Assembly (NCBI GenBank): GCA_004431415.1 | Contig: QPMI01000432.1 | Location: 124,001-188,000 of the forward strand | Direction of reading: 5' to 3' | Source of the DNA: Cyanophora paradoxa CCMP329 | Taxonomy: Eukaryota > Plantae > Glaucophyta | Length of the DNA stretch: 64,000 bases | In this document: one piece after another, positions 9,208 to 39,875 of the stretch | How the letters are laid out: each line of letters begins with the position of its first letter | How positions within the stretch are numbered: the stretch's first letter is position 1 | Notes under the pieces: generated by a model | What the model was told of the DNA's origin: nothing | Seen by the model: the letters and a program-made list of their open reading frames with translations, nothing else | Database searches by the model: none | Program-made: the position numbers and the translations under genes

Positions 9208-11474
9208 CTAAGTACTCGCTAGCTGCCTTACAAGGAGACTAACTAAGTGGTCAGAGACGGCCGTCCGAGCCATGTGCAGACTAAAGTCGGCAAAGATGCC
9301 ATCCTGTAGCTGCTGCTGATGCTGCTGAAGCGCAAAAGCCTTGGATGCCAGGAGTTCTCCAAGCAATCCATTGAGAAGAACATCTTCCATCTCTTCTATG
9401 ACCACTGTCTCTGCACGGTTGGCGACTGTGCCCACCAGCACGTCCAGCATTGCACTTTCAATAAATAGACGGGAGGCTTTGTCCTCAAGCAGCTCCAACT
9501 CTTCAGAGTTTCGTTCACCGAATAGAAGACTTTGGAAAGCCGTTGACACCTGCAAAATTAAAAGAATCAGCATGATACTTCTGGTCTGAGACACCATTTA
9601 TACCTCAAAGGAGATCGATCTGCACTCCTGCTGAATGCCTTCCTCAATAGTTTCTTCTGCAATGCTCTCGATAATAGTTTCTTGGTAGGCCTCCCTTGCA
9701 AGTTTGAACAACATAGGCTCGACAAACTCCTGGGTAAGGAACTCGACCCTGCATTCTGTTAAAAAAAAGATGACGAAATCAGAGGGGGATGTGACTATGC
9801 CCACCACTCTTTCTCCATGTGCTTTTCTGCCATCTCAATGATAGCCTCCCGCGCAATGGTTGAAAGAATGTAGCTCATGCTCTCGCCAACGAACTCCTCA
9901 GTGTAACTTTCTTCAGGCGTCTTGACTGCAGTGAGCTTCTGGTAGAAGTAGCTGCAGAGCAAGAGTAAGGCTGCTGTTGACTAAGAAAGGTCAATGGTCC
10001 GAAAAATGTGCCTGTTCACGAGTTCGTTGATGGCAGCATTGGCAGCCTTTCTAAGCTCCTGGGGCAAGCACTCCGAAAAGATGTCATCGAGGATGCCCTC
10101 CAGCAGCTCGTTGTACTGCCTTACACGCTCTTCTTCCACGGAAACCTCAACGATGGTCTGCCGTGCGACTTCGGGCAGCAGCGTCGATCTGAGCGTGTCG
10201 TGCACGAAGTCCAGCATGAAAATCAAAACATTGCGCTCCTCCCTCACCTGCAGAAGATATGTATTGGAGGACAAGTACACACAAAGGCCAGTGTACACAC
10301 CCTTCGTTGTGCACCCCGGAATGCTTCGTCCCTCGATTGCCATATCTTTCGTCCGATGATAAGATTTTCCAAAAGCAGACAGCGGTTTGGTGCAGACCTT
10401 GGTTCGCCACCAGCGCTGAAGGCGCCTGGCAGCTTTTCCCCGGCGCACATCTTCTCCTCCATGCTTTGAGTGCACGGATTCCCTGACAAGTTGAGCGCTG
10501 CCCGAATCCCTGTGGCATTGTTTGGCTCCTCTTACGACTGAGAGGCACAAACTTGGCGCACGATGCACTTGAGGACCCCGTTGACTCAGAGGAGGACCTG
10601 CGGTGCTGCCTCCTTCCCCTGGGCTCGTCTTGGACGACCAATTGCTGGATCACCCCTGCGAGAAGCTGAACCGCCGAGATGCCGTCGGGGCTGCTACGCC
10701 TTCGCCTGTGCCTGGACAGATGCACCCGGAAACGTTGGCCGGGCACGCGAGCAGTCGACCGCGAACAGACCTTCGAGCTCTTCGCCTCTCGCGCCGGTAG
10801 CGATCACGGCCTTCATTACTCTCGGGCAACGTCCGCGCGCTCAGCCGCAGGCGGTTCTCGGCAAGCTACGCCCACGCAGAATGTTGGCTCAGCAAACCGC
10901 GTGTCGAAGAGCGCCGCGGCTCACCGGAGGGGGGAGCTGCGTATAAGGTTGCGGGGGAAGCGGGGGGGGTCCCGCAGCGACCGGAGCAGCCAGGCCGCCG
11001 AGCGCCGCTAAGGAAGGCCAGGGAGGCGCCATGCCGTAGGCTCCAGCTTGTGGATGGCCTTGAAAAAGTGGATGTCCCGGCATTCCCTGCCACAACTCGT
11101 TTAATCGCGGCACGTACGCATGCTTAACCGGCGGCACCTGGTGCACAGAGGGTGCGCCCGGATAATACACGAGATGCTGGCCCGGCGCTGGCTGGGAGGG
11201 CGTGACGGCCTGAAGCACCTGAGGAATTCTGAAATAAGACTGAGCATACCTGATTGTAAGTCTGAAACGCTCGAGCCTGCGGCGGCTCCGAGAAGGAGCG
11301 CGAGCGGAGCGGCGAGAGCTGGCGGTGGCGGGCGGCTTCCTGCAGTAGCTGCTGCTGCATCATATTGTACCGCATGAGCTGCTCGGCGGGGTCATAGCCG
11401 GGCGGCAGCGCCGCCGGCCGTGGCCAGCCGGCCCCGGGCCACGCTGCGGCCTGCTGCTGCTGGGCGTACCACAT
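9208..11474 (-). CDS. Hypothetical protein with a Q/P-rich N-terminus, an IQ-like motif and an acidic helical C-terminus; start uncertain
   Basis: Exon ORFs MWYAQQQQ..., KAARRLQRWWRTK (IQ-like), VREERNVLIFMLDF..., VEFLTQEFVEPML... and VSTAFQSLL...QLAST*, separated by GT-AG introns. Confidence 0.6.
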
Positions 11475-11808
11475 GGCCGCTGCCTCCCTAGCCTCGGGGC
11501 ATACTGCAACTGTATCTAGGGCCGCCTCCTAACAACTCTAGCTAACGCGGCTCCCGCAGCCAAAGTCTTCGTAGGCGGCGCGAAGGCGTTGACGATCCGA
11601 GGTGCAGAGAGATTAGTGCCTGTGCGTAGAAAGCTATGAGGGCAAACCGCTCGCAGCCCGCTGCCCAGCGCCCAGCGCCGGCCACGTGATTGGGGGTACA
11701 CGCCACTCGGGCGATGCGGCTCAGGCGCTTCTGCAGCCGCGCGTTCTTGCGCTCATGACGCGCCATAGCAACTGCCAGTCGACACAGAAGCACCAGCGAA
11801 GTTTGTAG

Positions 11809-12540
11809 ATGAATCTCAGGATGCGGACGGAGAACTTGCAAGTTCTTCGCCAGGGAACGGGCCCCGCGGCCTTGCTGCTGGTTTACTGGCTAGCAGCGAT
11901 GCTTCTGGGCCTCTCAGACGCGCAGACCACCGGTGTGATTGCCCTGCCCCCGTCTATCGTCGCACCATGACCGTATCGCAGGAAACACCACCACGGCGTC
12001 GCTGGCGACAACCGTGAAGCCTGCGAGCAGCAATCACCATCAAGCTCGCTTGCGGATGGAAGGTGCCTCTCCACCCAAGCGTTCGGTGTTCGCCTTCTCA
12101 TAACTCTCTGCAGCGTTCCTGCGGCGGCTGCCGGGGCGGCGATCGCTGCGGTTGTTGTTGGGATCGCCTTCATCTTCATCTACCGCGCTTGCTACGTCAA
12201 CAGGAAGGGCCGAGTCGTCGGCGCTGGAATGGAGGCGCCCGCTGGCGAGGCTTTCGCGCAGAACCCGTTCAGCCAGCTTCAGACGCCAGCCTCTCAGCCT
12301 ATTGTACAAGGAACCGTGCAGATCACTCCGCAGCCCCGAGCGCCGTCATTGGTCGACCTCTCAGAGGACCCCCGCGGGGAGATCCGGCCGGCCAGCCGGA
12401 CGAGGTCGTCGGACACGGCGGACGATTACAGCTCGATGGACGACTCGATTGCCGCTAGGGTGCTGCTAGCACCGCGGCCTGGCTCTCGCGAACAACAGTC
12501 CCAGGGTTCGGAGTACAACAGCGCGAACAACTCTCTCTGA
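11809..12540 (+). pseudogene. Truncated duplicate of the receptor-kinase 5' half (signal peptide, TM, juxtamembrane; no kinase domain)
   Basis: Copy of 13175-13904. A 1-nt deletion shifts exon 2, and the duplication junction creates TGA (NSL*) at 12538-12540. Confidence 0.7.
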
Positions 12541-12840
12541 TGCTGGCCCGGCGCTGGCTGGGAGGGCGTGACGGCCTGAAGCACCTGAGGAATTCTGAAA
12601 TAAGACTGAGCATACCTGATTGTAAGTCTGAAACGCTCGAGCCTGCGGCGGCTCCGAGAAGGAGCGCGAGCGGAGCGGCGAGAGCTGGCGGTGGCGGGCG
12701 GCTTCCTGCAGTAGCTGCTGCTGCATCATATTGTACCGCATGAGCTGCTCGGCGGGGTCATAGCCGGGCGGCAGCGCCGCCGGCCGTGGCCAGCCGGCCC
12801 CGGGCCACGCTGCGGCCTGCTGCTGCTGGGCGTACCACAT
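12539..12840 (-). pseudogene. Truncated duplicate of the 5' exons of the IQ-motif gene
   Basis: Identical to 11173-11474 (MWYAQQQQ...) and cut at the duplication junction. Confidence 0.65.
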
Positions 12841-13174
12841 GGCCGCTGCCTCCCTAGCCTCGGGGCATACTGCAACTGTATCTAGGGCCGCCTCCTAACA
12901 ACTCTAGCTAACGCGGCTCCCGCAGCCAAAGTCTTCGTAGGCGGCGCGAAGGCGTTGACGATCCGAGGTGCAGAGAGATTAGTGCCTGTGCGTAGAAAGC
13001 TATGAGGGCAAACCGCTCGCAGCCCGCTGCCCAGCGCCCAGCGCCGGCCACGTGATTGGGGGTACACGCCACTCGGGCGATGCGGCTCAGGCGCTTCTGC
13101 AGCCGCGCGTTCTTGCGCTCATGACGCGCCATAGCAACTGCCAGTCGACACAGAAGCACCAGCGAAGTTTGTAG

Positions 13175-14885
13175 ATGAATCTCAGGATGCGGACGGAGAA
13201 CTTGCAAGTTCTTCGCCAGGGAACGGGCCCCGCGGCCTTGCTGCTGGTTTACTGGCTAGCAGCGATGCTTCTGGGCCTCTCAGACGCGCAGACCACCGGT
13301 GTGATTGCCCTGCCCCCGTCTATCGTCGCACCATGACCGTATCGCAGGAAACACCACCACGGCGTCGCTGGCGACAACCGTGAAGCCTGCCGAGCAGCAA
13401 TCACCATCAAGCTCGCTTGCGGATGGAAGGTGCCTCTCCACCCAAGCGTTCGGTGTTCGCCTTCTCATAACTCTCTGCAGCGTTCCTGCGGCGGCTGCCG
13501 GGGCGGCGATCGCTGCGGTTGTTGTTGGGATCGCCTTCATCTTCATCTACCGCGCTTGCTACGTCAACAGGAAGGGCCGAGTCGTCGGCGCTGGAATGGA
13601 GGCGCCCGCTGGCGAGGCTTTCGCGCAGAACCCGTTCAGCCAGCTTCAGACGCCAGCCTCTCAGCCTATTGTACAAGGAACCGTGCAGATCACTCCGCAG
13701 CCCCGAGCGCCGTCATTGGTCGACCTCTCAGAGGACCCCCGCGGGGAGATCCGGCCGGCCAGCCGGACGAGGTCGTCGGACACGGCGGACGATTACAGCT
13801 CGATGGACGACTCGATTGCCGCTAGGGTGCTGCTAGCACCGCGGCCTGGCTCTCGCGAACAACAGTCCCAGGGTTCGGAGTACAACAGCGCGAACAACTC
13901 TCTCGGATCCTGGCACAAGGGCATCCCCGGCAGCTCGCCGAACAGCCTCGGCCCTCCTTCTCGGACCCGGTCGGAAGCCTCGGAAGGCCTCCCATGTATT
14001 GCCGCTCTAATTCTCCCTTTCCTCTTTCTTTCTCGCGCACCAGGACACGTTCCAGTGCGCCGCCGACCGTCCGCAGCGCCGCGCCGCGCCCGCCGCTGAC
14101 ACCGCGCAGCCTGTACCTAGTGATGCCGAAGAGCCGGTGCACTCTGGAGCGGTACATCATGGCGAAGGAGCGCGTTGCGATGCCGTTTCTACTGGAATTT
14201 TCGCTGGACATAGCGCGCGGGATGCGGTATCTGCACCAGGACCACCGCGACGGCGAGCCGATCGCGCACCGCGACCTGAAGACCGCGAACATCCTCATGA
14301 TGGACAGCCCGGACACGGAGATCCCGTTCTGCCAGCTCTCCGACTTCGGAATCGCCCGGGACGCCTCGGCCTACACCGGCATCGTCGGCACCCGCCTCTA
14401 CATGTGCCCGGACGGCCTCAAGAAGAAGGACTACGACCCGCTCAAGGCGGACGTCTGGAGCTTTGGCCTCGTCGTGATGGAAATGTTCACGGGCCTGAAG
14501 CCCTACGGCGGCACCTGCTCGGACGACGGTCCGCCCCCGCCCGATTCCCCGCGCCCGCCTCGCCCCGCTGACTGGCCGCCAGACATCATTGCGGGCCGCC
14601 CGTTCTCGAGCGGGCAGATCGACAGACTGCCGGACTGCCTCCGCAACCTGGTCGCCGCCTGCCTCTCCCCGTCCCCCGTCGATCGCCCCTCCTTCGCCCG
14701 CGTGCGCCCCCTACCCCCCTACCCTGCCCCCCTTCTTCGTCCAGCAAGTCAGTACCCCTGAGCCGCCGCCCCTGGACGCCTAGGTCGTGGACCACCTGGA
14801 GGCCGCGGCGAAGGACGTCAACGCGGCCATCAACCGGAACCGCCCCGCGGAGAACCGCTCCCGCTACCTCACGATTGACAACTGA
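13175..14885 (+). CDS. Single-pass receptor-like (TKL-type) kinase with only the C-lobe present
   Basis: Signal peptide (AALLLVYWLAAMLLGLSDAQ), short T/S-rich ectodomain, TM AAIAAVVVGIAFIFIY plus RKGR. Then LYLVM..DIARGMRYLH..IAHRDLKTANIL..LSDFGIAR..GTRLYMCPD..KADVWSFG..CLSPSPVDRPSF..LTIDN*. No GxGxxG or VAxK found. Confidence 0.8.
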
Positions 14886-19276: not shown

Positions 19277-19839
19277 AGCAGAGTGCAGTATTCCTTCGTG
19301 AACTCAAGCTGAGGGCTGCCTGGTCGACTGTCGAACCTGGCATTTGGGGTTCATGTTCAATGGTTGGTATTGTATGGCATTTGCATGCATATGGTACTTC
19401 AGACAGATTAAATACTAGCAAGACTTAAGCTTCAATATTAATTAACCATGAAACACAGTCTCAGCTGCAGGGCCTGGGAGAAATTAAATGAAACCAGTGC
19501 ACGTGTGCAGCCTTGCATGCAGCCCCCCATGCAAATGAAGATGTTAACAAAGGCCCCTAGCTAGCTTGCGATCGATATCGGTGCAAAGATCGAGCTCGAG
19601 CTCCGTGCCAAACACGCCGTACCACGTATACGTATGTATACGTATACGGTCCTGGTCCAAGGTTGAAACCAGGCGTACCCCCGTCGGCTGCCTTCACTGG
19701 CTCGAGCGTTAGATAGAAGTCGCATTCTGCGGTGACACTACCGCCTTTGGATGCGGGGTGGCTAGGAGGACAAGTTCGTTTCGGCTGCGCGAAGGGGGCG
19801 GGATCTTGAACACGATCCTCGGCTCTGTCGCACCTTGCC

Positions 19840-22800
19840 ATGTTCCCGCTCGTTTTCAAGGTAGCAGATTCCCGCCTTTCGGCTTCGCCGCTGCTAACTG
19901 CCCGTGCCCTCTCCACGTACGCGCCGCAGAAATGCGAACTCCAGAGCTACCGCCGAATCCTCTCCAAGTATGTAAGCAAGAAGATTGGCGAGCCGGCGCT
20001 CGCCCACTATGAGCCGTAAGCCGCCCAGTCAACCGTGCCCGCTTCTCTGTCGAACCCGCGCGCTTGCGATCAGAATGATCCAGCTCCTGGAGAGGCTGCA
20101 GAGCGCGGTGTGCGCTATTCAGTCGGGGGGACCCGTGAACCATGACGGGCGGGACAACCTGCACAAGGTCGGTCCGGGGCGAGGCCTGTCCTGCCGCCGG
20201 CGCGACGCTGAGCTGAGCTGACGGGGGCGGGCGGCCGCAGTACTTCTCGCAGCTTCTGCTCCTGGAGGCGAACATATACGCGCAGGACGCGCGTGCGGAG
20301 GAGGCGCTGAAGATCGAGTACTGCTGGACGGACCTGTGGAACCCGAAGAAGAAGATCTCTATGACGAACATCGGGCTCGAGAAGGCTGGCGTGCTTCTCC
20401 AGCTCGCGCTCTACAACAACCAGCTCGGCATCCAGTCCTCCAAGAGCGCCCGCCTCTCCTACAGCTACTTCGCGGTCCGTTCGGGGACGGCGGGCACGGC
20501 CCAGCGCCGCGTCCCTCACGCGCGCCTCTCCGCATTCGCAGGCGGCCGCTGGTGTCGTCGCGCACCTGCAGGAGAGCATGCTCACGGGCCAGGTACGGCG
20601 GCGCCCACTGGGGCCGGCGCTTAGGGCCTCCGCTGGGCGGGGCTCACGGGCCCCGGGCCGCAGCTGCGGGGGGCCCAGGCGCCGGACCTCTCGCAAGAGA
20701 GCCTCTCCGGACTCTACAGCCTCTTTCTCGCCCACGCCTACGTGCGCCCGCTCCCCCGCCCCGCCCCGCCCCCGCCCCGCCCCGTCTTGAGGGCCGGCCG
20801 CCGGCGGGCGGGCGGGCAGGCCTGCTACTACGCGAACGCGATCGAGCAGAAGCAGGCCAAGGACGGGGTCATGGCCCGGCTGGCCGCCCAGGTGCCCCCC
20901 GCCTGATCTCCGAGCTGGGCGTTGCCTGCTCTGAGCTGCGCTCTCTCTGCCCCGGGCAGTCGGCGATCCACTACGGGGAGGCGGTGCGGGCGTTCACGAG
21001 CCTGGTCTCGGCGTACGGGCTCGACAAGCACCACTACATCCTCGAGGGCGCCCGCCGCCTCCACGCACACTACCAGGTCCGCCCCGGGGGCGCGCGCCAG
21101 GCGGAGAGGCTCTGGCGGGCGGCGCGGGCTCGCCTGCGCGGGCTGCACTCCCCGAATGAGACGCCCGCGCTTAGGGCTGACCAGGCTTAGGGCATAGTAT
21201 ATCCCCTAGCTAATCCAGCCGCACCCGCTGACGCTCGCGGCTCCCGCCAGGCGGAGGCGAACTACCGGATGGCGCTCGTGCTGCACGAGGGCGAGCGGCC
21301 CGAGGTGCGCTGCACGAGCGATGGCGCCGGGCCCTCCCTCCCGAGCCGACCGACTGACGTCTCCGCCTCCGCCGCCGTGGCCAGGTCGGCAAAGCGATCG
21401 CGCACCTGCAGCTGGCGGCGGGGCTCCTCTCGGGGGCCGGGCGGGAGCGGGACGGGGGCGCGTTCAGCGCGCTGCGGAGCAGGCCGGCGGTCTCGGAGGA
21501 GGACCGGGCGCTCCTGGGGGTCGTGCAGAACCACCTGGACGCCCTCCTCAAGGAGAACGCGGTGATCTACCAGCACGCGGTGCCCCCGCCCGAGGCCCTC
21601 CAGCCGGTCCCGGGCCTCCCCCGGCCCCTCGTCAAGCCCACGCCCTTCTCGGTCCGCGCGGCGCGGCGCGGCTCGGACCCCGATCGGGCTCGTCCTGATG
21701 GGCGGGGGCAGCCGGAGGGGCCGAGGGCGGGGGCGGGGGAGGACCCGTGGTCGGGGGGCCAGGGCCCCTCGTCGCAGGGGGCGGGCACGGTGCGGCACTT
21801 CGCCGGCCCGATGACCGTCCAGCAGCTCCTCCGGGAGGTCGAGTACCAGGTCGGCTGAGGCGCTGGCTAAAAATAGCAATTACCGCGAAGCTGGAGCTGA
21901 AGCCGCGCAGGCGACGGCGATGCGGGCGACGGCGGAGCAGTGCCAGCGGCAGATGGCGCTCAAGTTCATGGAGCCCGGGGCCGGCGTGCTGCCCCCGGCC
22001 CTCTTCACCGCCGTCCTCTCCCTCAAGGACGAGGCGGGCGAGCGGCCCGTCGCCCGCCTCGAGGAGGACCAGGGCGTCGCCCAGGTCCGCGGGGACGGGC
22101 CGGGGCCGGGGGGTTGCCAGAGGGGGGTACTGTCCGCTTCCGGCGCGCCTCGCGCCTTTCTCCTCGCTGGGATAGGGCAGGGGGGACGGCTGGCTAGGGG
22201 TGATGCCGCCCTCCCCCTCGAGACCTTGCGCACCCCCCTATCTTCCTTCTCACGCTCGAGCACCGCGCAGGCGATGGCGCGGGAGTGCAGGAGCCTCTAC
22301 GACCAGATCGAGGGCTCCCTCTCCCCGCTCGCCCAGGTCCCCCCTCCGCCCGCCCCCCCCGGGCTTCCTTCCGCCCCTTCGCCCCTGGACGCTCAGCCCC
22401 CGCTTCGTTCGCAGAAGGAGCTCTTCGACGAGCTGCGGGTGCAGCGGGTGAGCGTCCAGAAGGGGGAGCAGCACGCCTCGAACCTGCAGGAGCGCATCGC
22501 CAAGGCCCGGCCCCTCCTCGAGCGCCTCTCCACGCCCCGCGTGCGCCCCGCCCCGCCTTCTCCCCGCTCTTCTCTCTTGACCGATCTCGATCCAGGCGGA
22601 GCTGTTGAACCTGCGGCCGTACCCGGGCCCCGGGGGGCCGGGGAGCCGCGGGGCCGGGGCGCTGGGCCCCGCCGGCGGGGCGGTGCGGCCGCCGCAGCGC
22701 ATCGTGGACATGCTGAGCGCCCTGGAGGCGGCCGTGGCCAACCGCGATGCGGCCATCGGGCAGCTGCGGGCGCGCGCGCAGCGGGCCCCGCAGGCCCCCG

Positions 22801-25701
22801 CCAACGACGCCGAGGTCGAGGGCATCAAGGCGCGCCTGGACCAGGCCAACACGCAGCAGCTCGGCGTCGTCTCGGCGGTGCGCACGGCGCGGCGCATCCG
22901 TTTCGCTTGGCTGCCGCGCCCTTCTTCTCTTCTTCGCCGCTCTTATCCTCCCCTCCTCTCCCGACGCCGGCGGGCAGCTGGAGGCGGAGACGGGGCGCAT
23001 GAACGCCGAGGCGCCCGACCACGTCCGGCAGGTCCGCGCGCCGAGCTCGGGGCCGGCCCGCGCTTACCTTAGCCCGCGGGCGGGCGGGGCAGTGCGAGAG
23101 CATGCAGCACGAGTTCGAGGCGGCGGTGACGACCTTCCGGGAGATCCAGGCCGCCGCCCGCGAGGCCGCAGACTTCCTCGGCAGGTCCGTCCGTCCGCGC
23201 TTAGCCTGGGTCGCTTCCTCTGCCGCCGCCGCCGGCCGACCCCCGCGCAGCGTCCAGGACACGCTCCGGAAGTTCGCGGGGCGGGCCGCGGAGCGGAACC
23301 GGCAGCTCGGCGCCCGCTACGCCAACTACGGGCCGGGGCCGCAGGTCAACTACCCGCCCGCCGTACCCCCGTGCGCCCCGCCGCCCCCGCCCCGCCCCTC
23401 CCCTCCCCTGAGCCCCGTCTGAGAAAAGCCGCAGACCGCAGAACCTCATCCCGACGCCGTACCCCGGGCAGCAGCAGCAGGGCAGGGCGGGGCAGCCGGG
23501 GCCGCCCCCCGGCCTCCGCACGCCCCGCACGCCGGGCTCCGACATCTGTGCGCCGGCCCGCCCGCCCCTCCCGCCCCCGCCCCCCCCATGCACCGTCCGC
23601 CGTCCAGCGAACGGCTCGCCCGCCCGCGCGCGCGCGCCCGCAGCGGCGACGCAGTCGGACCAGATCCGGCCGGACCAGGTGCAGTTCGGGCCGGTGCTGG
23701 GCCGCGGCGGCTTCGGGCGGGTCTACCTGGGGACGTGGCTCGGCACCGAGGTCGCCATCAAGGAGCTCATGGTCAGCGCCGCAGAGATGGCCGCCCAGGT
23801 GAGCCTCAGCCGAAGCGCAAAAGCCCGCGACGCGACGGGCCCGGCGAGCGCGGCCTCTTAGCTCCGCGCGCGCCCGCCTCGCGCTGACGGGGGCGGGGGC
23901 GGGGGTACAGGCGCGGGACGACTTCCGTGCGGAGGTCGAGACCCTCCGGTGCGCCCGCCCCCGTTTCTTTCTCGCGCGCCCCGCGCCGCCCGCTTTCCTC
24001 CCCCTCCAGCCAGCTCTGACCGCTTCTCGCCCCGCCCCGCCCCGCCCCACAGAGCCCTGCGGGTAGCCGCCACCCACCCACCCACCCACCCCCGCCTACC
24101 CTTCTCCCCCCTCATTCCGTCTCCCCCCGCCCCTCGCAGCACCCGAACGTGATCCAGTTCTTCGGGGCGTACGAGAACAACAACCAGCTCTACATCGTCA
24201 CCGAGTTCGCGCAGCAGGGTCCGCCCCGGGCGGCGCGGCGCGGCGCGGGGCGGCGCGGGGATGAGATGGGATGGGATGGGAACATCGATTCCGTGGCTCC
24301 TCCTTGCACCCCCCCGCATCTTCCTTCCTGGCCCCTCGCCGCTGCGCTGAGACAGAGCGGCGGGCAGGGCACCTGCGCAACTTCCTGACGACGAAGCGGC
24401 CCAACTTTGAGCAGAAGATCTCAGTCATCTTCAACGTCCTCTGCGGTGCCCGCCCCGTACCCCGCCCCGCCCCGCCCCGCCCCGCCCCGCCCCGCCGCGG
24501 GTGCACGGGGCGCCCCCGCTCCCGGCTCAACCCGCCCCCGGCAGGGATGATGTACCTCGTCTCCCTGGAGCCGCCCATCCTCCACAGGGACCTCAAGTGC
24601 GCAGGCCGCGCGCCTCCGGCCAGCTCCCCCGCCCCCCGCTCACGCCCTGGCTCGCTGGCAGGTCGTTCAACGTGCTGATGATGGCGGACGGGCGGGCCAA
24701 GCTCGCCGACTTCGGCCTCGCCCGCATCAAGAGCGAGGCCCAGGCGAGCCAGCGAGCGTGTCCCGCTCCCCGCCCGGTCTCTGTCTGAGGGGCGCGCGCT
24801 CGGGCAGGCGACGATCAGCGCGGCGGGGACGCCGGCGTGGATGGCGCCGGAGCTGCTGCGGGGGGAGACGGGCTGCACCGAGCAGTCCGACGTCTTCTCC
24901 TTCGGCGTCCTCGTGCGCCCCGCGGGGGAGGGGAGGGGGCGGGTCGGGGGGTGCTGGGGCACGAGGGCTATTCAAGAGGGGGGGCCAGAGGCGTCGCCGT
25001 CCATCCCTCTGCGGGAAGGGGTCGACGCCCTGCGCTGCAGGTGTGGGAGATCGTGACGGAGGACCTGCCGTGGGTCGGCATCGAGCCCATCGCCGTCGTC
25101 GGCCAGGTCCCCTTCCCTCTCCCAGCCCCGCCCCGCCCCGCCCCGCCCCGGCGCCCATCTTCTCTCCAGGTCGGCTTCAACAAGCGGCGGCTGACCATCC
25201 CCGCCGACGTCCACCCCGCCCTCAAGCACCTCATCTCCCAGTGCTGGCGCGCCCCCCCGTGCTCCCGCCCGGCCCCCTAGTCTGAGGGGCGGGGCAGGGA
25301 GGAGGACCCGGCGCGGCGGCCGACCTTCCGGCGCATCCACGACGAGTTCACGCGCGCCTTCGCGCCCCTCGTCCGCGTCAACCTCGGCGCCGCCAGGTCC
25401 GATCCGCCCCCGCCCCCGCCCCAGCACAGCTGGATTCGATGTTCCGACCTCCTCGCTCGGCGCCGGCAGCTCGGGGGCGGGCGGGGAGAGCAACCCGGCG
25501 ACGTACATCGTGAACGGCAACGTGCAGCAGGCGCGGGGCGGGGGCGGCTCGGGCGACGGCCAGAGCGACGGCTCCTTCTTCTCGTTCCTCGGGAACACCC
25601 TCTCGGGGCGGCCGCGCGCCGGCAACGGCAACGGGCCCGGCGGAGGCGGCGGCGGCGGCCAGGGCGGCGAGCAGCGGGCCGGCGGGTGCGCGCAGCAATG
25701 A
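19840..25701 (+). CDS. ALIX-like BRO1 + V domain + Pro-rich region fused to a TKL (Raf/MLK-like) kinase, C-terminal CAQQ
   Basis: BRO1: EYCWTDLW..NIGLEKAGVLLQLA..PDLSQESL..ARLAAQ..AEANYRMA..GKAIAHLQ..KENAVIYQHAVP..LVKPTP. V-domain end: FEAAVTTFREIQAAAREAADFL. PRR: YPPAVPP|PQNLIPTPYPG. Kinase: LGRGGFGRVY, VAIK, FRAEV, HPNVI, LHRDLK|SFNVL, DFG, GTPAWMAPE, SDVFSFG, CW|EEDPARRP. Ends GGCAQQ*. All junctions are in frame. Confidence 0.88.
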
Positions 25702-25772
25702 CAGTGGCGGCCTCTCTTTTGTGTCTGTTATTTTTTTGTGCGCAAAGAGAGAGAAATAGAGAAGAGCTGTAG

Positions 25773-27470
25773 CTAGGGGCCGGGCCCGGCGAGGGCGGCC
25801 ATGGACGAGGCGATGTCGGATAGGACGGGGTCCGCGGCGCCGCCCGGCACCAGCAGCGCCGCCGCCGGGCGTACTCGCGCGCCACCCTCCCCGCGAGGCG
25901 CCGCAGCCGGGCCGCCGCCTCGGGCCCGGGGGGCGCCCCCCGCTCCGCGAGGGCCTGCAGGAGCGGGGCGAGGGCGTAGGTCCCGAAGTGGGCCCCGTCC
26001 TGGGCGTAGAAGGGCCCCACGTGCGCCTCGGACCACTCCAGGAACTGCTCGGCCGCCTCCACGGCCGCCTCAAGTGCGGCGCCCGCCCCGCGGGCGTCCC
26101 GCGCCCAGTGCTGCGCCGCCAGCCGCCGGCACCAGGCGGGGGCCCAGTGGCGCGGCCCCAGGGTGCGCGAGAGCTGCTGGGCGTACGCCGAGAGGGTCTC
26201 GGGGGTACCCCCCTCGAGCTCGAGGGCCTCGGTACCCATCCAGGAGGCCACGTTCTGGGCCGCTTCGGCCTCCGCCTCGAGGGGCATGTCCGCGTCCGAC
26301 CACGTACCCCCGCACTTGTCGCAGGGCTGCCGGGCGCCGCGGGGCGCTCGCTCAGACTTCGGAGGGGCGCGGGCCGGTGGGGCGGGGATAGAAAGGGCGC
26401 GTACCCCCCAGCGGGTCGGCTCCCCGGGGGAGGGGAAGACGGAGCCGTCGCAGCCGTCGCCGGCGCACCAGAGCCCGCGGCACGTGTCGGGGGCCGAGCA
26501 GCGCGCGCAGGCGCAGCGGAAGCTCTTCGTCCACTCCAGCTGCGCCCGCCGCAGGTCCGCCCCGATCGCGAGGTACTTCCCTGCGCGAGGCCTCAGCCGC
26601 GCGGCGGCGTGTCGAGGCGGGCGGGCGGGCGCGGGCGGGGACCTGGGAGGTAGGAGGTGGACGCGAGCTCGCCGGCGGGGAGGGCCCGCACGACGCGCAG
26701 GACGAGCCGCTGGCCTCCGCCGGGCCACGCCTCCCACGCGTGCAGCAGCGCGGGCCCGCAGGAGTGCGCGAGCTTCCCCGCGCGCTCGAAGAGCCCCACG
26801 AGGTCGTTCCCCGCCGCGAACGAGTTCGTCGTCGCCGCGAGCACCGCGTGCACGCACGCCTCCTTCGCCAGCGCCCTGAACGGCGGCGCGCCAGACGCCT
26901 CCATCGCGCACCGCCGCAGGCTCTGCAGGTAGGGCGTGACCCGGTCCGCCGGAGGGACCGCGAAGTCCATCACGCGAGCGGCGGCCTGCGGCCGCGCGCG
27001 GGCGCTCGATCCCGGGCGGCGACTGCGCAGAGGGAAGCGCGAGCGAGCGGACGCGCACCTCGGGGCTCTTCGCGAGCGCCGCCAGCACGTACACGGTGTC
27101 GACGTGCACGGGCGCGAACTTCTCCGGCGATCGCGCGGCGTCCGAGTTCACCTTGCGGACGATGGCGTTGAGCTGCGGCGCGTGCAATCAGCGGAGCACG
27201 ATCGATGTGTGCGAGTGCTAGCTGATTCCGGGCTTAGCTAGGGCTTGGCCGGCCGGTGAGCGAGCGCACCGCGCGGTAAGCGGGGTCCTTGAGGTCAGGC
27301 TGCGGGTTCGCGGGCCACGCGAGGAGCGGTTCCTCGGCGAGGAAGACCTCGCCCGGGGCGAACGCGCGCACGGCCACCGCCGCGCGGCCAACATCGCCGT
27401 CGAAAGACTTGACCGCCCACCCAAGCGCCTCGAGTCCCTCCGACCAGTGCGGCGCGCTTGCGGCCGCCAT
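25773..27470 (-). CDS. SET-domain (SMYD-like) lysine methyltransferase
   Basis: VGRAAVAVRAFAPGEVFLAEEPL, TNSF..GLFERAGKLAHSCGP, LRVVRALPAGELASTSYL, LRRAQLEWTKSFRCACARC (post-SET), CxxxxC..CDKC. One apparent C-run frameshift near 25870. Confidence 0.85.
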
Positions 27471-30134: not shown

Positions 30135-33100
30135 AACCTAGGCAAAAGTGCAAGCAGGGGGCCCGCACGGCATTGATACAGCCCTCGCGCATGTTGAAGA
30201 CTTGATTTGCGCGCAAGTCCGAGGTCCGCACGCTCCAGCTTCCGATCCCACAGGACCGTTAACGTTGGGGGGTGGGACCGTTGGGGGGATACATACTCAG
30301 ATTGGCATCGGGCACGATGCTGCTCGCAGAGCGCTCGTCTACGCTCCTGCAGCAGCTCTTGAGCCGGCACATCGTCGTCGTCCGCGCCAAGCACGCGCAG
30401 TTCAGCGCTCAGCCGCCCGCGCAGAGAGGAACGTCGCCGTACGCTCCGGAGCGCGGCCCGGGTCAGCATGTGCTCTTTCTTTCATCTCTTGAGCAGTCTG
30501 GTGCGTCTCGGGCAGCGCCTCGTCCCCTTTGGCTGCGCTCTAAGCCGCGCACCGAGGTCTCTTCGACGAACTGGGCGCAAGGCTCACTGCCTGGTCGCCG
30601 AGTCACCGCAACAACGTCAAGGCCACCGATACGGGTCGTCGGCTTCTTGATCTTCTGCGGAAAGAGCCCTGGAAGCTCGCGGTTTGGCCTACGTCCGCGT
30701 TGCGCACTTCTTTCCAAGGGCTCTGTGCCCGCTTTTCGCTTGCGCAGTTCAACAGCTGGTCACCGGCGACGACGAACGTGCAGAGGGCGGCGGCTTCGCG
30801 GCGGCGGAAGCGGGCGAGCGACCTGGCAGCCGTGCCGGTGGCCACGCAGGCGCTGCATGGCGGCCGTGGGCGCGAACCGCTTGCGTACGCGGGTCTACTA
30901 CTTCTTCTCCTTCGAAGGCTTAACGGTTCGCCCTTCCTCGCCTCGCCTTGGGGTCGCTTCCGTTCTGACCGTTGTTTCCCTCCTTCTCAAGCTCTCTTTC
31001 GGGGCGAGATCTTCCGTGCGGAGCATGCGGGATGCATCATCCTGTGCGGTGAGAAGGCTCTGCAGTTTCTTCTCGGTCAGGTTCGCGCTGCCGTTCTTTT
31101 CCGCGATTCCGCCGCCGTACGCGACACGCAGTCGCAGGCACCTGTGCGCTGGACTGGGCTCATTATGAACATCTGCATCAAAGGCACGACGACGAGCGGC
31201 CGCGCGGAGGCGTGGAAGGCGTTCCGGGCGAGGCGGGACTGGGTAAGCGTCCCCAAGGACGACCGCTTGCAGATCCCAGGCGGGCAAGCACCCGACTACA
31301 GCTTCGTGCTCGAACCTAGGCAAAAGTGCAAGCAGGGGCCCGCACGGCATTGATACAGCCCTCGCGCATGTTGAAGACTTGATTTGCGCGCAAGTCCGAG
31401 GTCCGCACGCTCCAGCTTCCGATCCCACAGGACCGTTAACGTTGGGGGTGGGACCGTTGGGGGATACATACTCAGATTGGCATCGGGCACGATGCTGCTC
31501 GCAGAGCGCTCGTCTACGCTCCTGCAGCAGCTCTTGAGCCGGCACATCGTCGTCGTCCGCGCCAAGCACGCGCAGTTCAGCGCTCAGCCGCCCGCGCAGA
31601 GAGGAACGTCGCCGTACGCTCCGGAGCGCGGCCCGGGTCAGCATGTGCTCTTTCTTTCATCTCTTGAGCAGTCTGGTGCGTCTCGGGCAGCGCCTCGTCC
31701 CCTTTGGCTGCGCTCTAAGCCGCGCACCGAGGTCTCTTCGACGAACTGGGCGCAAGGCTCACTGCCTGGTCGCCGAGTCACCGCAACAACGTCAAGGCCA
31801 CCGATACGGGTCGTCGGCTTCTTGATCTTCTGCGGAAAGAGCCCTGGAAGCTCGCGGTTTGGCCTACGTCCGCGTTGCGCACTTCTTTCCAAGGGCTCTG
31901 TGCCCGCTTTTCGCTTGCGCAGTTCAACAGCTGGTCACCGGCGACGACGAACGTGCAGAGGGCGGCGGCTTCGCGGCGGCGGAAGCGGGCGAGCGACCTG
32001 GCAGCCGTGCCGGTGGCCACGCAGGCGCTGCATGGCGGCCGTGGGCGCGAACCGCTTGCGTACGCGGGTCTACTACTTCTTCTCCTTCGAAGGCTTAACG
32101 GTTCGCCCTTCCTCGCCTCGCCTTGGGTCGCTTCCGTTCTGACCGTTGTTTCCCTCCTTCTCAAGCTCTCTTTCGGGCGAGATCTTCCGTGCGGAGCATG
32201 CGGGATGCATCATCCTGTGCGGTGAGAAGGCTCTGCAGTTTCTTCTCGGTCAGGTTCGCGCTGCCGTTCTTTTCCGCGATTCCGCCGCCGTACGCGACAC
32301 GCAGTCGCAGGCACCTGTGCGCTGGACTGGGCTCATTATGAACATCTGCATCAAAGGCACGACGACGAGCGGCCGCGCGGAGGCGTGGAAGGCGTTCCGG
32401 GCGAGGCGGGACTGGGTAAGCGTCCCCAAGGACGACCGCTTGCAGATCCCAGGCGGGCAAGCACCCGACTACAGCTTCGTGCTCGAACCTAGGCAAAAGT
32501 GCAAGCAGGGGGCCCGCACGGCATTGATACAGCCCTCGCGCATGTTGAAGACTTGATTTGCGCGCAAGTCCGAGGTCCGCACGCTCCAGCTTCCGATCCC
32601 ACAGGACCGTTAACGTTGGGGGGTGGGACCGTTGGGGGGATACATACTCAGATTGGCATCGGGCACGATGCTGCTCGCAGAGCGCTCGTCTACGCTCCTG
32701 CAGCAGCTCTTGAGCCGGCACATCGTCGTCGTCCGCGCCAAGCACGCGCAGTTCAGCGCTCAGCCGCCCGCGCAGAGAGGAACGTCGCCGTACGCTCCGG
32801 AGCGCGGCCCGGGTCAGCATGTGCTCTTTCTTTCATCTCTTGAGCAGTCTGGTGCGTCTCGGGCAGCGCCTCGTCCCCTTTGGCTGCGCTCTAAGCCGCG
32901 CACCGAGGTCTCTTCGACGAACTGGGCGCAAGGCTCACTGCCTGGTCGCCGAGTCACCGCAACAACGTCAAGGCCACCGATACGGGTCGTCGGCTTCTTG
33001 ATCTTCTGCGGAAAGAGCCCTGGAAGCTCGCGGTTTGGCCTACGTCCGCGTTGCGCACTTCTTTCCAAGGGCTCTGTGCCCGCTTTTCGCTTGCGCAGTT

Positions 33101-36100
33101 CAACAGCTGGTCACCGGCGACGACGAACGTGCAGAGGGCGGCGGCTTCGCGGCGGCGGAAGCGGGCGAGCGACCTGGCAGCCGTGCCGGTGGCCACGCAG
33201 GCGCTGCATGGCGGCCGTGGGCGCGAACCGCTTGCGTACGCGGGTCTACTACTTCTTCTCCTTCGAAGGCTTAACGGTTCGCCCTTCCTCGCCTCGCCTT
33301 GGGGTCGCTTCCGTTCTGACCGTTGTTTCCCTCCTTCTCAAGCTCTCTTTCGGGGCGAGATCTTCCGTGCGGAGCATGCGGGATGCATCATCCTGTGCGG
33401 TGAGAAGGCTCTGCAGTTTCTTCTCGGTCAGGTTCGCGCTGCCGTTCTTTTCCGCGATTCCGCCGCCGTACGCGACACGCAGTCGCAGGCACCTGTGCGC
33501 TGGACTGGGCTCATTATGAACATCTGCATCAAAGGCACGACGACGAGCGGCCGCGCGGAGGCGTGGAAGGCGTTCCGGGCGAGGCGGGACTGGGTAAGCG
33601 TCCCCAAGGACGACCGCTTGCAGATCCCAGGCGGGCAAGCACCCGACTACAGCTTCGTGCTCGAACCTAGGCAAAAGTGCAAGCAGGGGGCCCGCACGGC
33701 ATTGATACAGCCCTCGCGCATGTTGAAGACTTGATTTGCGCGCAAGTCCGAGGTCCGCACGCTCCAGCTTCCGATCCCACAGGACCGTTAACGTTGGGGG
33801 GTGGGACCGTTGGGGGGATACATACTCAGATTGGCATCGGGCACGATGCTGCTCGCAGAGCGCTCGTCTACGCTCCTGCAGCAGCTCTTGAGCCGGCACA
33901 TCGTCGTCGTCCGCGCCAAGCACGCGCAGTTCAGCGCTCAGCCGCCCGCGCAGAGAGGAACGTCGCCGTACGCTCCGGAGCGCGGCCCGGGTCAGCATGT
34001 GCTCTTTCTTTCATCTCTTGAGCAGTCTGGTGCGTCTCGGGCAGCGCCTCGTCCCCTTTGGCTGCGCTCTAAGCCGCGCACCGAGGTCTCTTCGACGAAC
34101 TGGGCGCAAGGCTCACTGCCTGGTCGCCGAGTCACCGCAACAACGTCAAGGCCACCGATACGGGTCGTCGGCTTCTTGATCTTCTGCGGAAAGAGCCCTG
34201 GAAGCTCGCGGTTTGGCCTACGTCCGCGTTGCGCACTTCTTTCCAAGGGCTCTGTGCCCGCTTTTCGCTTGCGCAGTTCAACAGCTGGTCACCGGCGACG
34301 ACGAACGTGCAGAGGGCGGCGGCTTCGCGGCGGCGGAAGCGGGCGAGCGACCTGGCAGCCGTGCCGGTGGCCACGCAGGCGCTGCATGGCGGCCGTGGGC
34401 GCGAACCGCTTGCGTACGCGGGTCTACTACTTCTTCTCCTTCGAAGGCTTAACGGTTCGCCCTTCCTCGCCTCGCCTTGGGGTCGCTTCCGTTCTGACCG
34501 TTGTTTCCCTCCTTCTCAAGCTCTCTTTCGGGGCGAGATCTTCCGTGCGGAGCATGCGGGATGCATCATCCTGTGCGGTGAGAAGGCTCTGCAGTTTCTT
34601 CTCGGTCAGGTTCGCGCTGCCGTTCTTTTCCGCGATTCCGCCGCCGTACGCGACACGCAGTCGCAGGCACCTGTGCGCTGGACTGGGCTCATTATGAACA
34701 TCTGCATCAAAGGCACGACGACGAGCGGCCGCGCGGAGGCGTGGAAGGCGTTCCGGGCGAGGCGGGACTGGGTAAGCGTCCCCAAGGACGACCGCTTGCA
34801 GATCCCAGGCGGGCAAGCACCCGACTACAGCTTCGTGCTCGAACCTAGGCAAAAGTGCAAGCAGGGGCCCGCACGGCATTGATACAGCCCTCGCGCATGT
34901 TGAAGACTTGATTTGCGCGCAAGTCCGAGGTCCGCACGCTCCAGCTTCCGATCCCACAGGACCGTTAACGTTGGGGGTGGGACCGTTGGGGGATACATAC
35001 TCAGATTGGCATCGGGCACGATGCTGCTCGCAGAGCGCTCGTCTACGCTCCTGCAGCAGCTCTTGAGCCGGCACATCGTCGTCGTCCGCGCCAAGCACGC
35101 GCAGTTCAGCGCTCAGCCGCCCGCGCAGAGAGGAACGTCGCCGTACGCTCCGGAGCGCGGCCCGGGTCAGCATGTGCTCTTTCTTTCATCTCTTGAGCAG
35201 TCTGGTGCGTCTCGGGCAGCGCCTCGTCCCCTTTGGCTGCGCTCTAAGCCGCGCACCGAGGTCTCTTCGACGAACTGGGCGCAAGGCTCACTGCCTGGTC
35301 GCCGAGTCACCGCAACAACGTCAAGGCCACCGATACGGGTCGTCGGCTTCTTGATCTTCTGCGGAAAGAGCCCTGGAAGCTCGCGGTTTGGCCTACGTCC
35401 GCGTTGCGCACTTCTTTCCAAGGGCTCTGTGCCCGCTTTTCGCTTGCGCAGTTCAACAGCTGGTCACCGGCGACGACGAACGTGCAGAGGGCGGCGGCTT
35501 CGCGGCGGCGGAAGCGGGCGAGCGACCTGGCAGCCGTGCCGGTGGCCACGCAGGCGCTGCATGGCGGCCGTGGGCGCGAACCGCTTGCGTACGCGGGTCT
35601 ACTACTTCTTCTCCTTCGAAGGCTTAACGGTTCGCCCTTCCTCGCCTCGCCTTGGGGTCGCTTCCGTTCTGACCGTTGTTTCCCTCCTTCTCAAGCTCTC
35701 TTTCGGGGCGAGATCTTCCGTGCGGAGCATGCGGGATGCATCATCCTGTGCGGTGAGAAGGCTCTGCAGTTTCTTCTCGGTCAGGTTCGCGCTGCCGTTC
35801 TTTTCCGCGATTCCGCCGCCGTACGCGACACGCAGTCGCAGGCACCTGTGCGCTGGACTGGGCTCATTATGAACATCTGCATCAAAGGCACGACGACGAG
35901 CGGCCGCGCGGAGGCGTGGAAGGCGTTCCGGGCGAGGCGGGACTGGGTAAGCGTCCCCAAGGACGACCGCTTGCAGATCCCAGGCGGGCAAGCACCCGAC
36001 TACAGCTTCGTGCTCGAGCTTCTGACGATCACTGAGAAGGACGCAGTCGTGCGCGTGCTCTGCCTGAGTTTTCCGCACGCGCGCTCGGCCGATTCTCACA

Positions 36101-39100
36101 GAACGCGTGCAGAAGTGCGGGTTGAAGGCCCGCGAGCGACCTCGGACCTCGCTGGTCGCCTGGAGTGGAGTGCACAGGTGCGAAGCGCCCGCTGCGCTGC
36201 CTCGCAGGCTGCTTCTGACCCCGCACGCGCACGTACGCAGGAGGCTGTCCGGCGCTGCCTCGCGGAGGACGGCGCGGCCAGCGAGGACGTGCAGCGCATC
36301 CTCCTAAACTCGCTCACTCTCGAGAAGAACGTCGAGCAGCTGACGTCGAAGGACCCGCCGCCGCGTCAGCGCGGCATCATCTCGGTGGCCGGCTTTTTGA
36401 ATTCGCCCGCGGCCTGTGCGTACGCCTGCTGACTCTGCCTTGCGCAGGTTCTGGCCTGCGTTTGCCTCGCAGAGCGCCTGCCGAGCGCCGCCTTCCCGCG
36501 CTGCGCGAACGCGGGCATAGGCTCTGGCGTCGGCACTTCGGCCTGGGACGCCGCCTGGTGTGCAGCTTCTCAATGCGCACGGCTGCGCGTATCTGATTCC
36601 CGCTCTGCAGGGACGCGATCTCAGCGGATCTGGGGCGGGTCGCCCCGCCGGCAATCCCGGCGCCGGCGGATCTCGGCGTCCCTTCACCTACGCAAGCGTA
36701 CGCGCCAGCGCCCCGTAGCCCCTCTTAAAAGCCCGCCCCCAACTGTTTCTTTACGAATCTTGTGGGATCCCGCACGGCATTGATACAGAGTGCAAGCAGG
36801 GGGCCCGCACGGCATTGATACAGCCCTCGCGCATGTTGAAGACTTGATTTGCGCGCAAGTCCGAGGTCCGCACGCTCCAGCTTCCGATCCCACAGGACCG
36901 TTAACGTTGGGGGGTGGGACCGTTGGGGGGATACATACTCAGATTGGCATCGGGCACGATGCTGCTCGCAGAGCGCTCGTCTACGCTCCTGCAGCAGCTC
37001 TTGAGCCGGCACATCGTCGTCGTCCGCGCCAAGCACGCGCAGTTCAGCGCTCAGCCGCCCGCGCAGAGAGGAACGTCGCCGTACGCTCCGGAGCGCGGCC
37101 CGGGTCAGCATGTGCTCTTTCTTTCATCTCTTGAGCAGTCTGGTGCGTCTCGGGCAGCGCCTCGTCCCCTTTGGCTGCGCTCTAAGCCGCGCACCGAGGT
37201 CTCTTCGACGAACTGGGCGCAAGGCTCACTGCCTGGTCGCCGAGTCACCGCAACAACGTCAAGGCCACCGATACGGGTCGTCGGCTTCTTGATCTTCTGC
37301 GGAAAGAGCCCTGGAAGCTCGCGGTTTGGCCTACGTCCGCGTTGCGCACTTCTTTCCAAGGGCTCTGTGCCCGCTTTTCGCTTGCGCAGTTCAACAGCTG
37401 GTCACCGGCGACGACGAACGTGCAGAGGGCGGCGGCTTCGCGGCGGCGGAAGCGGGCGAGCGACCTGGCAGCCGTGCCGGTGGCCACGCAGGCGCTGCAT
37501 GGCGGCCGTGGGCGCGAACCGCTTGCGTACGCGGGTCTACTACTTCTTCTCCTTCGAAGGCTTAACGGTTCGCCCTTCCTCGCCTCGCCTTGGGGTCGCT
37601 TCCGTTCTGACCGTTGTTTCCCTCCTTCTCAAGCTCTCTTTCGGGGCGAGATCTTCCGTGCGGAGCATGCGGGATGCATCATCCTGTGCGGTGAGAAGGC
37701 TCTGCAGTTTCTTCTCGGTCAGGTTCGCGCTGCCGTTCTTTTCCGCGATTCCGCCGCCGTACGCGACACGCAGTCGCAGGCACCTGTGCGCTGGACTGGG
37801 CTCATTATGAACATCTGCATCAAAGGCACGACGACGAGCGGCCGCGCGGAGGCGTGGAAGGCGTTCCGGGCGAGGCGGGACTGGGTAAGCGCTCCCAAGG
37901 ACGACCGCTTGCAGATCCCAGGCGGGCAAGCACCCGACTACAGCTTCGTGCTCGAACCTAGGCAAAAGTGCAAGCAGGGGGCCCGCACGGCATTGATACA
38001 GCCCTCGCGCATGTTGAAGACTTGATTTGCGCGCAAGTCCGAGGTCCGCACGCTCCAGCTTCCGATCCCACAGGACCGTTAACGTTGGGGGGTGGGACCG
38101 TTGGGGGGATACATACTCAGATTGGCATCGGGCACGATGCTGCTCGCAGAGCGCTCGTCTACGCTCCTGCAGCAGCTCTTGAGCCGGCACATCGTCGTCG
38201 TCCGCGCCAAGCACGCGCAGTTCAGCGCTCAGCCGCCCGCGCAGAGAGGAACGTCGCCGTACGCTCCGGAGCGCGGCCCGGGTCAGCATGTGCTCTTTCT
38301 TTCATCTCTTGAGCAGTCTGGTGCGTCTCGGGCAGCGCCTCGTCCCCTTTGGCTGCGCTCTAAGCCGCGCACCGAGGTCTCTTCGACGAACTGGGCGCAA
38401 GGCTCACTGCCTGGTCGCCGAGTCACCGCAACAACGTCAAGGCCACCGATACGGGTCGTCGGCTTCTTGATCTTCTGCGGAAAGAGCCCTGGAAGCTCGC
38501 GGTTTGGCCTACGTCCGCGTTGCGCACTTCTTTCCAAGGGCTCTGTGCCCGCTTTTCGCTTGCGCAGTTCAACAGCTGGTCACCGGCGACGACGAACGTG
38601 CAGAGGGCGGCGGCTTCGCGGCGGCGGAAGCGGGCGAGCGACCTGGCAGCCGTGCCGGTGGCCACGCAGGCGCTGCATGGCGGCCGTGGGCGCGAACCGC
38701 TTGCGTACGCGGGTCTACTACTTCTTCTCCTTCGAAGGCTTAACGGTTCGCCCTTCCTCGCCTCGCCTTGGGTCGCTTCCGTTCTGACCGTTGTTTCCCT
38801 CCTTCTCAAGCTCTCTTTCGGGCGAGATCTTCCGTGCGGAGCATGCGGGATGCATCATCCTGTGCGGTGAGAAGGCTCTGCAGTTTCTTCTCGGTCAGGT
38901 TCGCGCTGCCGTTCTTTTCCGCGATTCCGCCGCCGTACGCGACACGCAGTCGCAGGCACCTGTGCGCTGGACTGGGCTCATTATGAACATCTGCATCAAA
39001 GGCACGACGACGAGCGGCCGCGCGGAGGCGTGGAAGGCGTTCCGGGCGAGGCGGGACTGGGTAAGCGTCCCCAAGGACGACCGCTTGCAGATCCCAGGCG

Positions 39101-39875
39101 GGCAAGCACCCGACTACAGCTTCGTGCTCGAGCTTCTGACGATCACTGAGAAGGACGCAGTCGTGCGCGTGCTCTGCCTGAGTTTTCCGCACGCGCGCTC
39201 GGCCGATTCTCACAGAACGCGTGCAGAAGTGCGGGTTGAAGGGCCCGCGAGCGACCTCGGACCTCGCTGGTCGCCTGGAGTGGAGTGCACAGGTGCGAAG
39301 CGCCCGCTGCGCTGCCTCGCAGGCTGCTTCTGACCCGCACGCGCACGTACGCAGGAGGCTGTCCGGCGCTGCCTCGCGGAGGACGGCGCGGCCAGCGAGG
39401 ACGTGCAGCGCATCCTCCTAAACTCGCTCACTCTCGAGAAGAACGTCGAGCAGCTGACGTCGAAGGACCCGCCGCCGCGTCAGCGCGGCATCATCTCGGT
39501 GGCCGGCTTTTTGAATTCGCCCGCGGCCTGTGCGTACGCCTGCTGACTCTGCCTTGCGCAGGTTCTGGCCTGCGTTTGCCTCGCAGAGCGCCTGCCGAGC
39601 GCCGCCTTCCCGCGCTGCGCGAACGCGGGCATAGGCTCTGGCGTCGGCACTTCGGCCTGGGACGCCGCCTGGTGTGCAGCTTCTCAATGCGCACGGCTGC
39701 GCGTATCTGATTCCCGCTCTGCAGGGACGCGATCTCAGCGGATCTGGGGCGGGTCGCCCCGCCGGCAATCCCGGCGCCGGCGGATCTCGGCGTCCCTTCA
39801 CCTACGCAAGCGTACGCGCCAGCGCCCCGTAGCCCCTCTTAAAAGCCCGCCCCCAACTGTTTCTTTACGAATCTT
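30135..39875. repeat. Nested tandem array A5-B-A2-B: seven ~1.18-kb units (A) plus two ~0.745-kb tails (B)
   Basis: A starts at 30135, 31313, 32486, 33664, 34842, 36789 (12 nt shorter) and 37955. B lies at 36017-36761 and 39131-39875. The copies are near-identical apart from G/C-run lengths and a gtcccc>gctccc change at ~37890. Confidence 0.97.
38676..39842 (+). CDS. 3' exons of a spliced hypothetical gene whose body is the amplified unit (5' end probably near 29650)
   Basis: Exon chain with GT-AG introns: ..LFRGEIFRAEHAGCIILCGEKALQFLLGQ|APVRWTGLIMNICIKG..FVLELLTITEKDAV|KCGLKGP..WSAQ|EAVRRCLAEDG..RGIIS|VLACVCL..DAAW|DAISAD..PRSPS*. Confidence 0.5.

Follow-up and report, generated by a model that had tools for sequence, protein, structure and literature searches.

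The glaucophyte Cyanophora paradoxa carries a real, spliced, and expressed gene in which an ALIX-like BRO1-V scaffold is continued in a single reading frame by a TKL kinase domain and a terminal CaaX motif. The gene lies within a 64,000-nucleotide stretch of contig QPMI01000432.1, referred to below as the window, in which all coordinates are given. BRO1-V-TKL kinase-CaaX is apparently an undescribed variant of ALIX known from one species, and its product is a candidate for a kinase that docks on ESCRT-III.

RESULTS

One spliced transcript encodes the whole protein. Exons rebuilt by script define a coding sequence at 19840..25701 (+), whose 31 exons and 30 introns yield 3312 nt and 1103 amino acids without an internal stop, ending in CAQQ*. 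The original prediction had traced one frame through about 25 introns; the single frame holds, but the count rises to 30. Intron sizes range from 51 to 186 nt, with 28 GT-AG and 2 GC-AG introns (24744 and 25247), and a 10-nt microexon follows kinase helix C (24053-24062, +), and three RNA runs have its letters between the two sides of the joint. Third-position GC is 0.93 to 0.99 in all five parts of the coding sequence, linker and tail included. The protein model is already in a public gene set: database protein P0001 (EukProt EP00741, Cyanophora paradoxa tig00020610_g11988.t1) is identical to the rebuilt model.

The stretch is present in 11 RNA-type runs from three studies (the RNA label is an automatic guess, and the contigs are nonetheless spliced), and three of these runs plus one DNA-type run (X12) were compared with the locus. 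In each of two studies, a single RNA contig crosses 23300-23750 and covers the gene from its BRO1 exons as far as the CAQQ codons of the final exon, namely, a 3511-nt contig in study P2 (X4, record 10) and a 4949-nt contig in study P1 (X1, record 1). The offset between these contigs and the coding sequence is constant at 8/8 tested pieces, so that all intron lengths of the model agree with the transcript, those at the two joins critical for the fusion included. The first join (23370/23435) is fixed by length through these offsets, while the second (23547/23644) is listed directly in three RNA runs and is absent from X12; altogether, the three RNA runs list 15 splice joints, of which X12 has none. 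DNA contigs also cover the locus. The joins predicted at about 23370/23434 and 23548/23644 are thus in frame, as had been proposed, with no stop or intergenic gap between the halves, and neither transcripts that end before the kinase nor a separate kinase start were seen.

The transcript spans approximately 19691-25751, beginning about 149 nt 5' of the ATG and ending near 25750, and its 5' untranslated region holds a four-codon upstream open reading frame (19751-19762). By computation, retention of intron 23371-23434 would expose a stop at 23420 and shorten the product to 725 aa, an ALIX-like protein that lacks the kinase and CaaX motif. Retention was not seen in the contigs, which drop minor isoforms, and a splice switch at this intron is possible.

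Past the 3' end of the gene, the X1 contig continues toward a convergent minus-strand neighbor (25773-27187, -) with a Cys-rich CxCxxC stretch that appears SET/SMYD-like by eye and has no Pfam match; its frame may run antisense into the last exons of the fusion gene (stop at 25277) or else shift near 25860. Elsewhere in the window are a tandem duplication of about 1370 bp with 99.8% identity (11173-13914) and an array in which a 1178-bp unit is repeated in tandem about 8 times, with copies more than 99.5% identical and no Pfam or Rfam match (30135-39875).

The N-terminal half has the fold of ALIX and a largely conserved hydrophobic CHMP4 patch. The BRO1 domain (aa 2-358, exons 1-10, 19843..21651, +) scores 176 bits against a Pfam cut-off of 35 (E 1e-51), and its predicted fold matches chain 3c3o of the ALIX-CHMP4A complex (VIA Z 36.7, rmsd 2.5). 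In alignments to human ALIX and 21 homologues, the surface-1 residues I212 and L216 of human ALIX correspond to V205 and L209, F199, the aromatic residue before the patch, corresponds to Y191, and the lysine of the GLK motif corresponds to R138; the ALIX numbering of F199 and L216 in the CHMP4 patch is the one we take to be standard. At surface 2, ALIX I318-Y319 is matched by I330-Y331, with Y331 kept. Relative to the 21 homologues, residues beside the patch have drifted, GLK becoming SAR and the conserved AQAQ...KA becoming AHAY...NA. As judged from these alignments, the hydrophobic core of the predicted CHMP4 patch is conservatively kept and its flanking polar residues are changed. Such positions matter in known proteins: I212D in ALIX blocks or impairs CHMP4 binding, and in BROX, a farnesylated CHMP4 binder, K141E/K144E or L212D abolishes it (PMC3230590).

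The V domain (aa ~377-692, exons 11-18, 21766..23320, +), proposed originally as a V-domain-like helical region, is real despite a Pfam ALIX_LYPXL_bnd match that covers only aa 602-681 and falls below the cut-off. The protein aligns colinearly to residue 683 with the ALIX of the glaucophyte Gloeochaete (27%, E 4e-59), and also with the canonical ALIX of C. paradoxa (27% identity), and Atlas features of aa 355-700 rank ALIX V clusters first (0.94). An AlphaFold2 model (pLDDT 80.6) has six long helices in the V region and matches full ALIX 2oev in Foldseek (E 3e-19); for its V part, the best VIA match is the ALIX V domain 2oex (Z 14.8, 288 residues), where helical bundles reach about 13 by chance. 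This support is not fully independent, since the model was built with an ALIX alignment. Features of the V domain tied to cargo are eroded. In place of FYxxL, the motif on which YPXnL ligands depend (PMC5145805), the protein has F666-L-G-S-V670, with Phe kept, Tyr and Leu changed, and the preceding EG turned into EA. A V loop of about 23 aa, whose Trp is present in 21/21 homologues, is deleted after L482. The linker that follows (aa 693-752, 23321..23660, +) crosses the introns at 23371-23434 and 23548-23643 and leads into the kinase; it is rich in Pro, Gly, Gln, and Tyr, much as first described. With about 60 aa, this proline-rich region is internal rather than of the long terminal type found in ALIX, and it contains no P(S/T)AP or PPxY motif.

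The C-terminal half is a predicted active kinase with a probable lipid-anchor signal. The TKL Ser/Thr kinase domain (aa 760-1010, exons 20-30, 23682..25346, +; Pfam PK_Tyr_Ser-Thr, E 3e-59) keeps every motif that had been read from the DNA (GRGGFG, VAIK, the helix-C Glu, HRDLK, DFG, and APE), at G766-G771, K786, E806, H880-R-D882-L-K884-x-x-N887, DFG 900, and APE 924. HRDLK together with GTPAWMAPE (of the GTxxWMAPE type) is a Ser/Thr pattern. The domain is therefore predicted to be an active Ser/Thr kinase, and its reading as a pseudokinase is rejected. Plant Raf-like kinases of the CTR1/EDR1/SIS8 and PAS types share 41 to 44% identity with the domain, and in a tree of search matches only it is sister to the CTR1/EDR1/PAS-type group (83/89, a node that is not starred). 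The plant kinases differ in bearing their own EDR1 or PAS domain, where the fusion has BRO1-V.

A Gly-rich flexible tail without a polybasic run (aa 1011-1099, 25347..25686, +) leads to the CAQQ motif and stop codon (25687..25701, +), a C-a-a-X sequence with X = Q that does close the reading frame once the introns are removed, as the spliced RNA contigs confirm. The end of the tail (25660-25701) presumably resembles DnaJ-A C termini, and the CaaX motif may have arisen by capture or by convergence. In Arabidopsis J2/J3, CAQQ carries a farnesyl group that aids membrane association, while non-anchor roles of farnesylation are described for the yeast orthologue (PMC5769771). By analogy, CAQQ is probably a lipid-anchor signal here. 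The tail contains neither a basic run nor a palmitoylation-type second cysteine near CAQQ, so that the motif would give weak membrane affinity; of the earlier description of the protein as membrane anchored, the motif stands, and firm anchoring is too strong.

The fusion gene is a diverged duplicate of a glaucophyte ALIX gene. A canonical 845-aa ALIX (tig00020610_g11953) is encoded 35 gene numbers away on the same contig, beyond the window, which answers the earlier question of whether a separate ALIX exists and indicates that the fusion is a fast-evolving duplicate of glaucophyte ALIX. In a BRO1-V tree of 14 rows, from which the long-branch rows (Euglena, Aureoumbra, P0018, and Convolutriloba) and near-duplicates were left out, the fusion forms a clade with the two glaucophyte ALIX proteins (100/99) on a branch two to three times longer than theirs (1.57 versus 0.47 and 0.72). 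With the long-branch rows included, the glaucophyte ALIX clade is recovered at 79 SH-aLRT. These placements support descent of the fusion from ALIX; the order of the duplication relative to the Cyanophora-Gloeochaete split has a p-AU of 0.35 in the BRO1-V tree. Both halves look native to Archaeplastida, given the ALIX clade and the plant-type kinase placement, and we infer duplication and domain gain within the lineage. Transfer from a distant lineage is rejected. The 27% identity to the paralogue points to a duplicate of great age.

No second BRO1-TKL fusion was found. In searches capped in number and limited in length, residues 1-700 matched only the protein itself among the matches listed, a phmmer search with exon 4 against 1.84 billion representatives returned only the fusion and Gloeochaete ALIX, and no Atlas cluster held both BRO1 and a kinase; none of the best 120 kinase matches contained BRO1. 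The architecture had been put forward as undescribed, and our literature search likewise found no BRO1-kinase, with subscription papers mostly outside its coverage; the C. paradoxa genome paper does not mention ESCRT, ALIX, or Bro1.

A candidate for an independent parallel exists in Euglena gracilis, where a single transcript model, EG_transcript_1062 (P0027, 1148 aa), combines BRO1 (11-349) and an alpha-kinase (816-994) with V-like helices between them, although a profile comparison of the V region by itself falls short of significance (E 0.038). It shares the order of BRO1, V-like helices, and kinase with the Cyanophora protein and differs in the unrelated fold of its kinase and in lacking a CaaX motif. 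The conserved V-loop Trp seemingly is lost there too, and no paper on this transcript was found. If it is real, the two proteins represent convergence on BRO1-V-kinase. Haptophytes and diatoms have BRO1-UBA and BRO1-V-UBA proteins (P0023, P0025, and Atlas rows), further signs of BRO1 proteins gaining accessory domains in algae.

DISCUSSION

The fusion recombines elements found separately in known proteins. It shares the colinear BRO1-V-proline-rich order with ALIX/PDCD6IP, yeast Bro1, AtBRO1, and the ALIX proteins of C. paradoxa (g11953) and Gloeochaete; it differs from them in the added kinase and CaaX motif, the short proline-rich region, and the eroded FYxxL motif and V loop. Like HD-PTP/PTPN23, it continues BRO1-V-PRR into a phospho-signaling domain, but that of HD-PTP is a holozoan tyrosine phosphatase (PMC4342544), whereas the fusion has a Ser/Thr kinase of independent origin and a CaaX motif; orthology to HD-PTP is rejected, as Pfam finds a kinase and no phosphatase. 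ULK3, which binds and phosphorylates ESCRT-III (PMC4475061), likewise ties a kinase to an ESCRT-III-binding module, predicted as such in the fusion, but does so with tandem MIT domains and a ULK kinase, and the targeting modules are not homologous. BROX is a BRO1 protein ending in a farnesylation motif, also predicted in the fusion, and has no V domain or kinase; with both of these between BRO1 and CaaX, orthology to BROX is rejected. The original prediction had seen in this gene a candidate for a new system. We read it instead as a new variant of ALIX, because it duplicates an ALIX that the genome retains in canonical form, is known from one species, and has eroded cargo features, with a candidate parallel BRO1-alpha-kinase in Euglena.

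The reading that we favor, and on which we regard the balance as even, is an ESCRT-III-docked kinase that works like ULK3 and is built like HD-PTP. The recruitment to Snf7/CHMP4 proposed originally is plausible in this light. After local duplication of a glaucophyte ALIX gene, one copy would have kept little of its proline-rich tail and acquired a Raf-like kinase with a CaaX tail, giving up cargo capture to serve as an address, while canonical ALIX retained the housekeeping adaptor role. BRO1 would dock on the C-terminal helix of the ESCRT-III protein Snf7/CHMP4, the farnesyl group would contribute weak membrane affinity, and together they would place an active Ser/Thr kinase at ESCRT sites (the endosome, the abscission bridge, or the flagellar membrane), where its substrates could be ESCRT-III subunits, cofactors, or cargo. 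Each element of this scheme, from binding of Snf7 and farnesylation to catalysis, location, and substrates, is a prediction. In its favor are the single spliced transcript, the BRO1 fold match, the hydrophobic CHMP4-patch residues, the retention of the whole BRO1-V region despite 27% identity, the intact kinase residues, and the precedents of ULK3, BROX, and red-algal ALIX. The last is located at the cleavage furrow and at the abscission bridge (PMC7169423), which by analogy makes these a plausible site for the fusion. The reading is weakened by the long branch, the changed polar residues at the CHMP4 patch, the existence of Bro1 proteins that do not bind Snf7, the absence of an orthologue, among the matches listed, for a conservation test, and the lack of a second membrane signal.

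Several of these points fit a Raf-like signaling kinase in which BRO1-V is a regulatory, dimerizing, or autoinhibitory module independent of ESCRT-III, an alternative that we consider possible but clearly less probable. The related CTR1/EDR1/PAS kinases bear varied N-terminal regulatory modules, ALIX dimerizes via its V domain (PMC3230590), and the erosion of FYxxL and the V loop and the changed polar residues near the CHMP4 patch speak for it; rhophilin-2 (PMC3230590) and plant BRAF are Bro1 proteins that do not bind Snf7. However, the hydrophobic patch and surface-2 Y331 are kept, and a 375-residue BRO1 fold would be costly as a mere spacer.

It is unlikely that the ALIX copy is an integrated decoy, baiting viral or parasite hijackers of ESCRT whose binding activates the kinase for defense. 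Viral late domains often target ALIX (PMC5145805) and the putative bait half diverges fast, but the pocket for late domains has eroded instead of being preserved, and the one copy found shows no sign of a diversifying family. Less probable still is that domain shuffling yielded a nearly neutral protein, expressed but dispensable: its being known from a single species would suit this, yet the duplicate, for all its great age, has preserved its reading frame, fold, catalytic motifs, codon bias, and 30 spliced introns. Two adjacent genes or an assembly artifact read as one, in favor of which a minor kinase-less isoform from intron retention could be cited, is highly improbable and, as the main form, is ruled out by the spliced contigs of two studies and the DNA contigs over the locus.

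Kinase control of ESCRT-III timing is known mainly from animals, through ULK3, Aurora B, and Src acting on ALIX. The fusion may deliver phosphorylation right where membranes are cut, and it would offer a one-protein system for finding ESCRT phosphosites in a lineage that lacks an actomyosin-type literature. That it is known from one species, for which few genetic tools exist, limits its weight. More tentatively, BRO1-V-kinases could be a recurrent and so far undescribed class of "writers" of phosphorylation at ESCRT sites, a counterpart to holozoan HD-PTP that arose separately in euglenids, with an alpha-kinase, and in glaucophytes, with a TKL kinase and farnesyl tail, with the Cyanophora protein timing ESCRT-III scission by phosphorylating the polymer to which it is bound. 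If ESCRT binding has been lost, the protein would still exemplify an ALIX scaffold reused to regulate a Raf-like kinase. An ALIX-kinase fusion in an early-branching relative of plants, together with the Euglena parallel, would show that BRO1-V has served repeatedly as an address label for phospho-enzymes.
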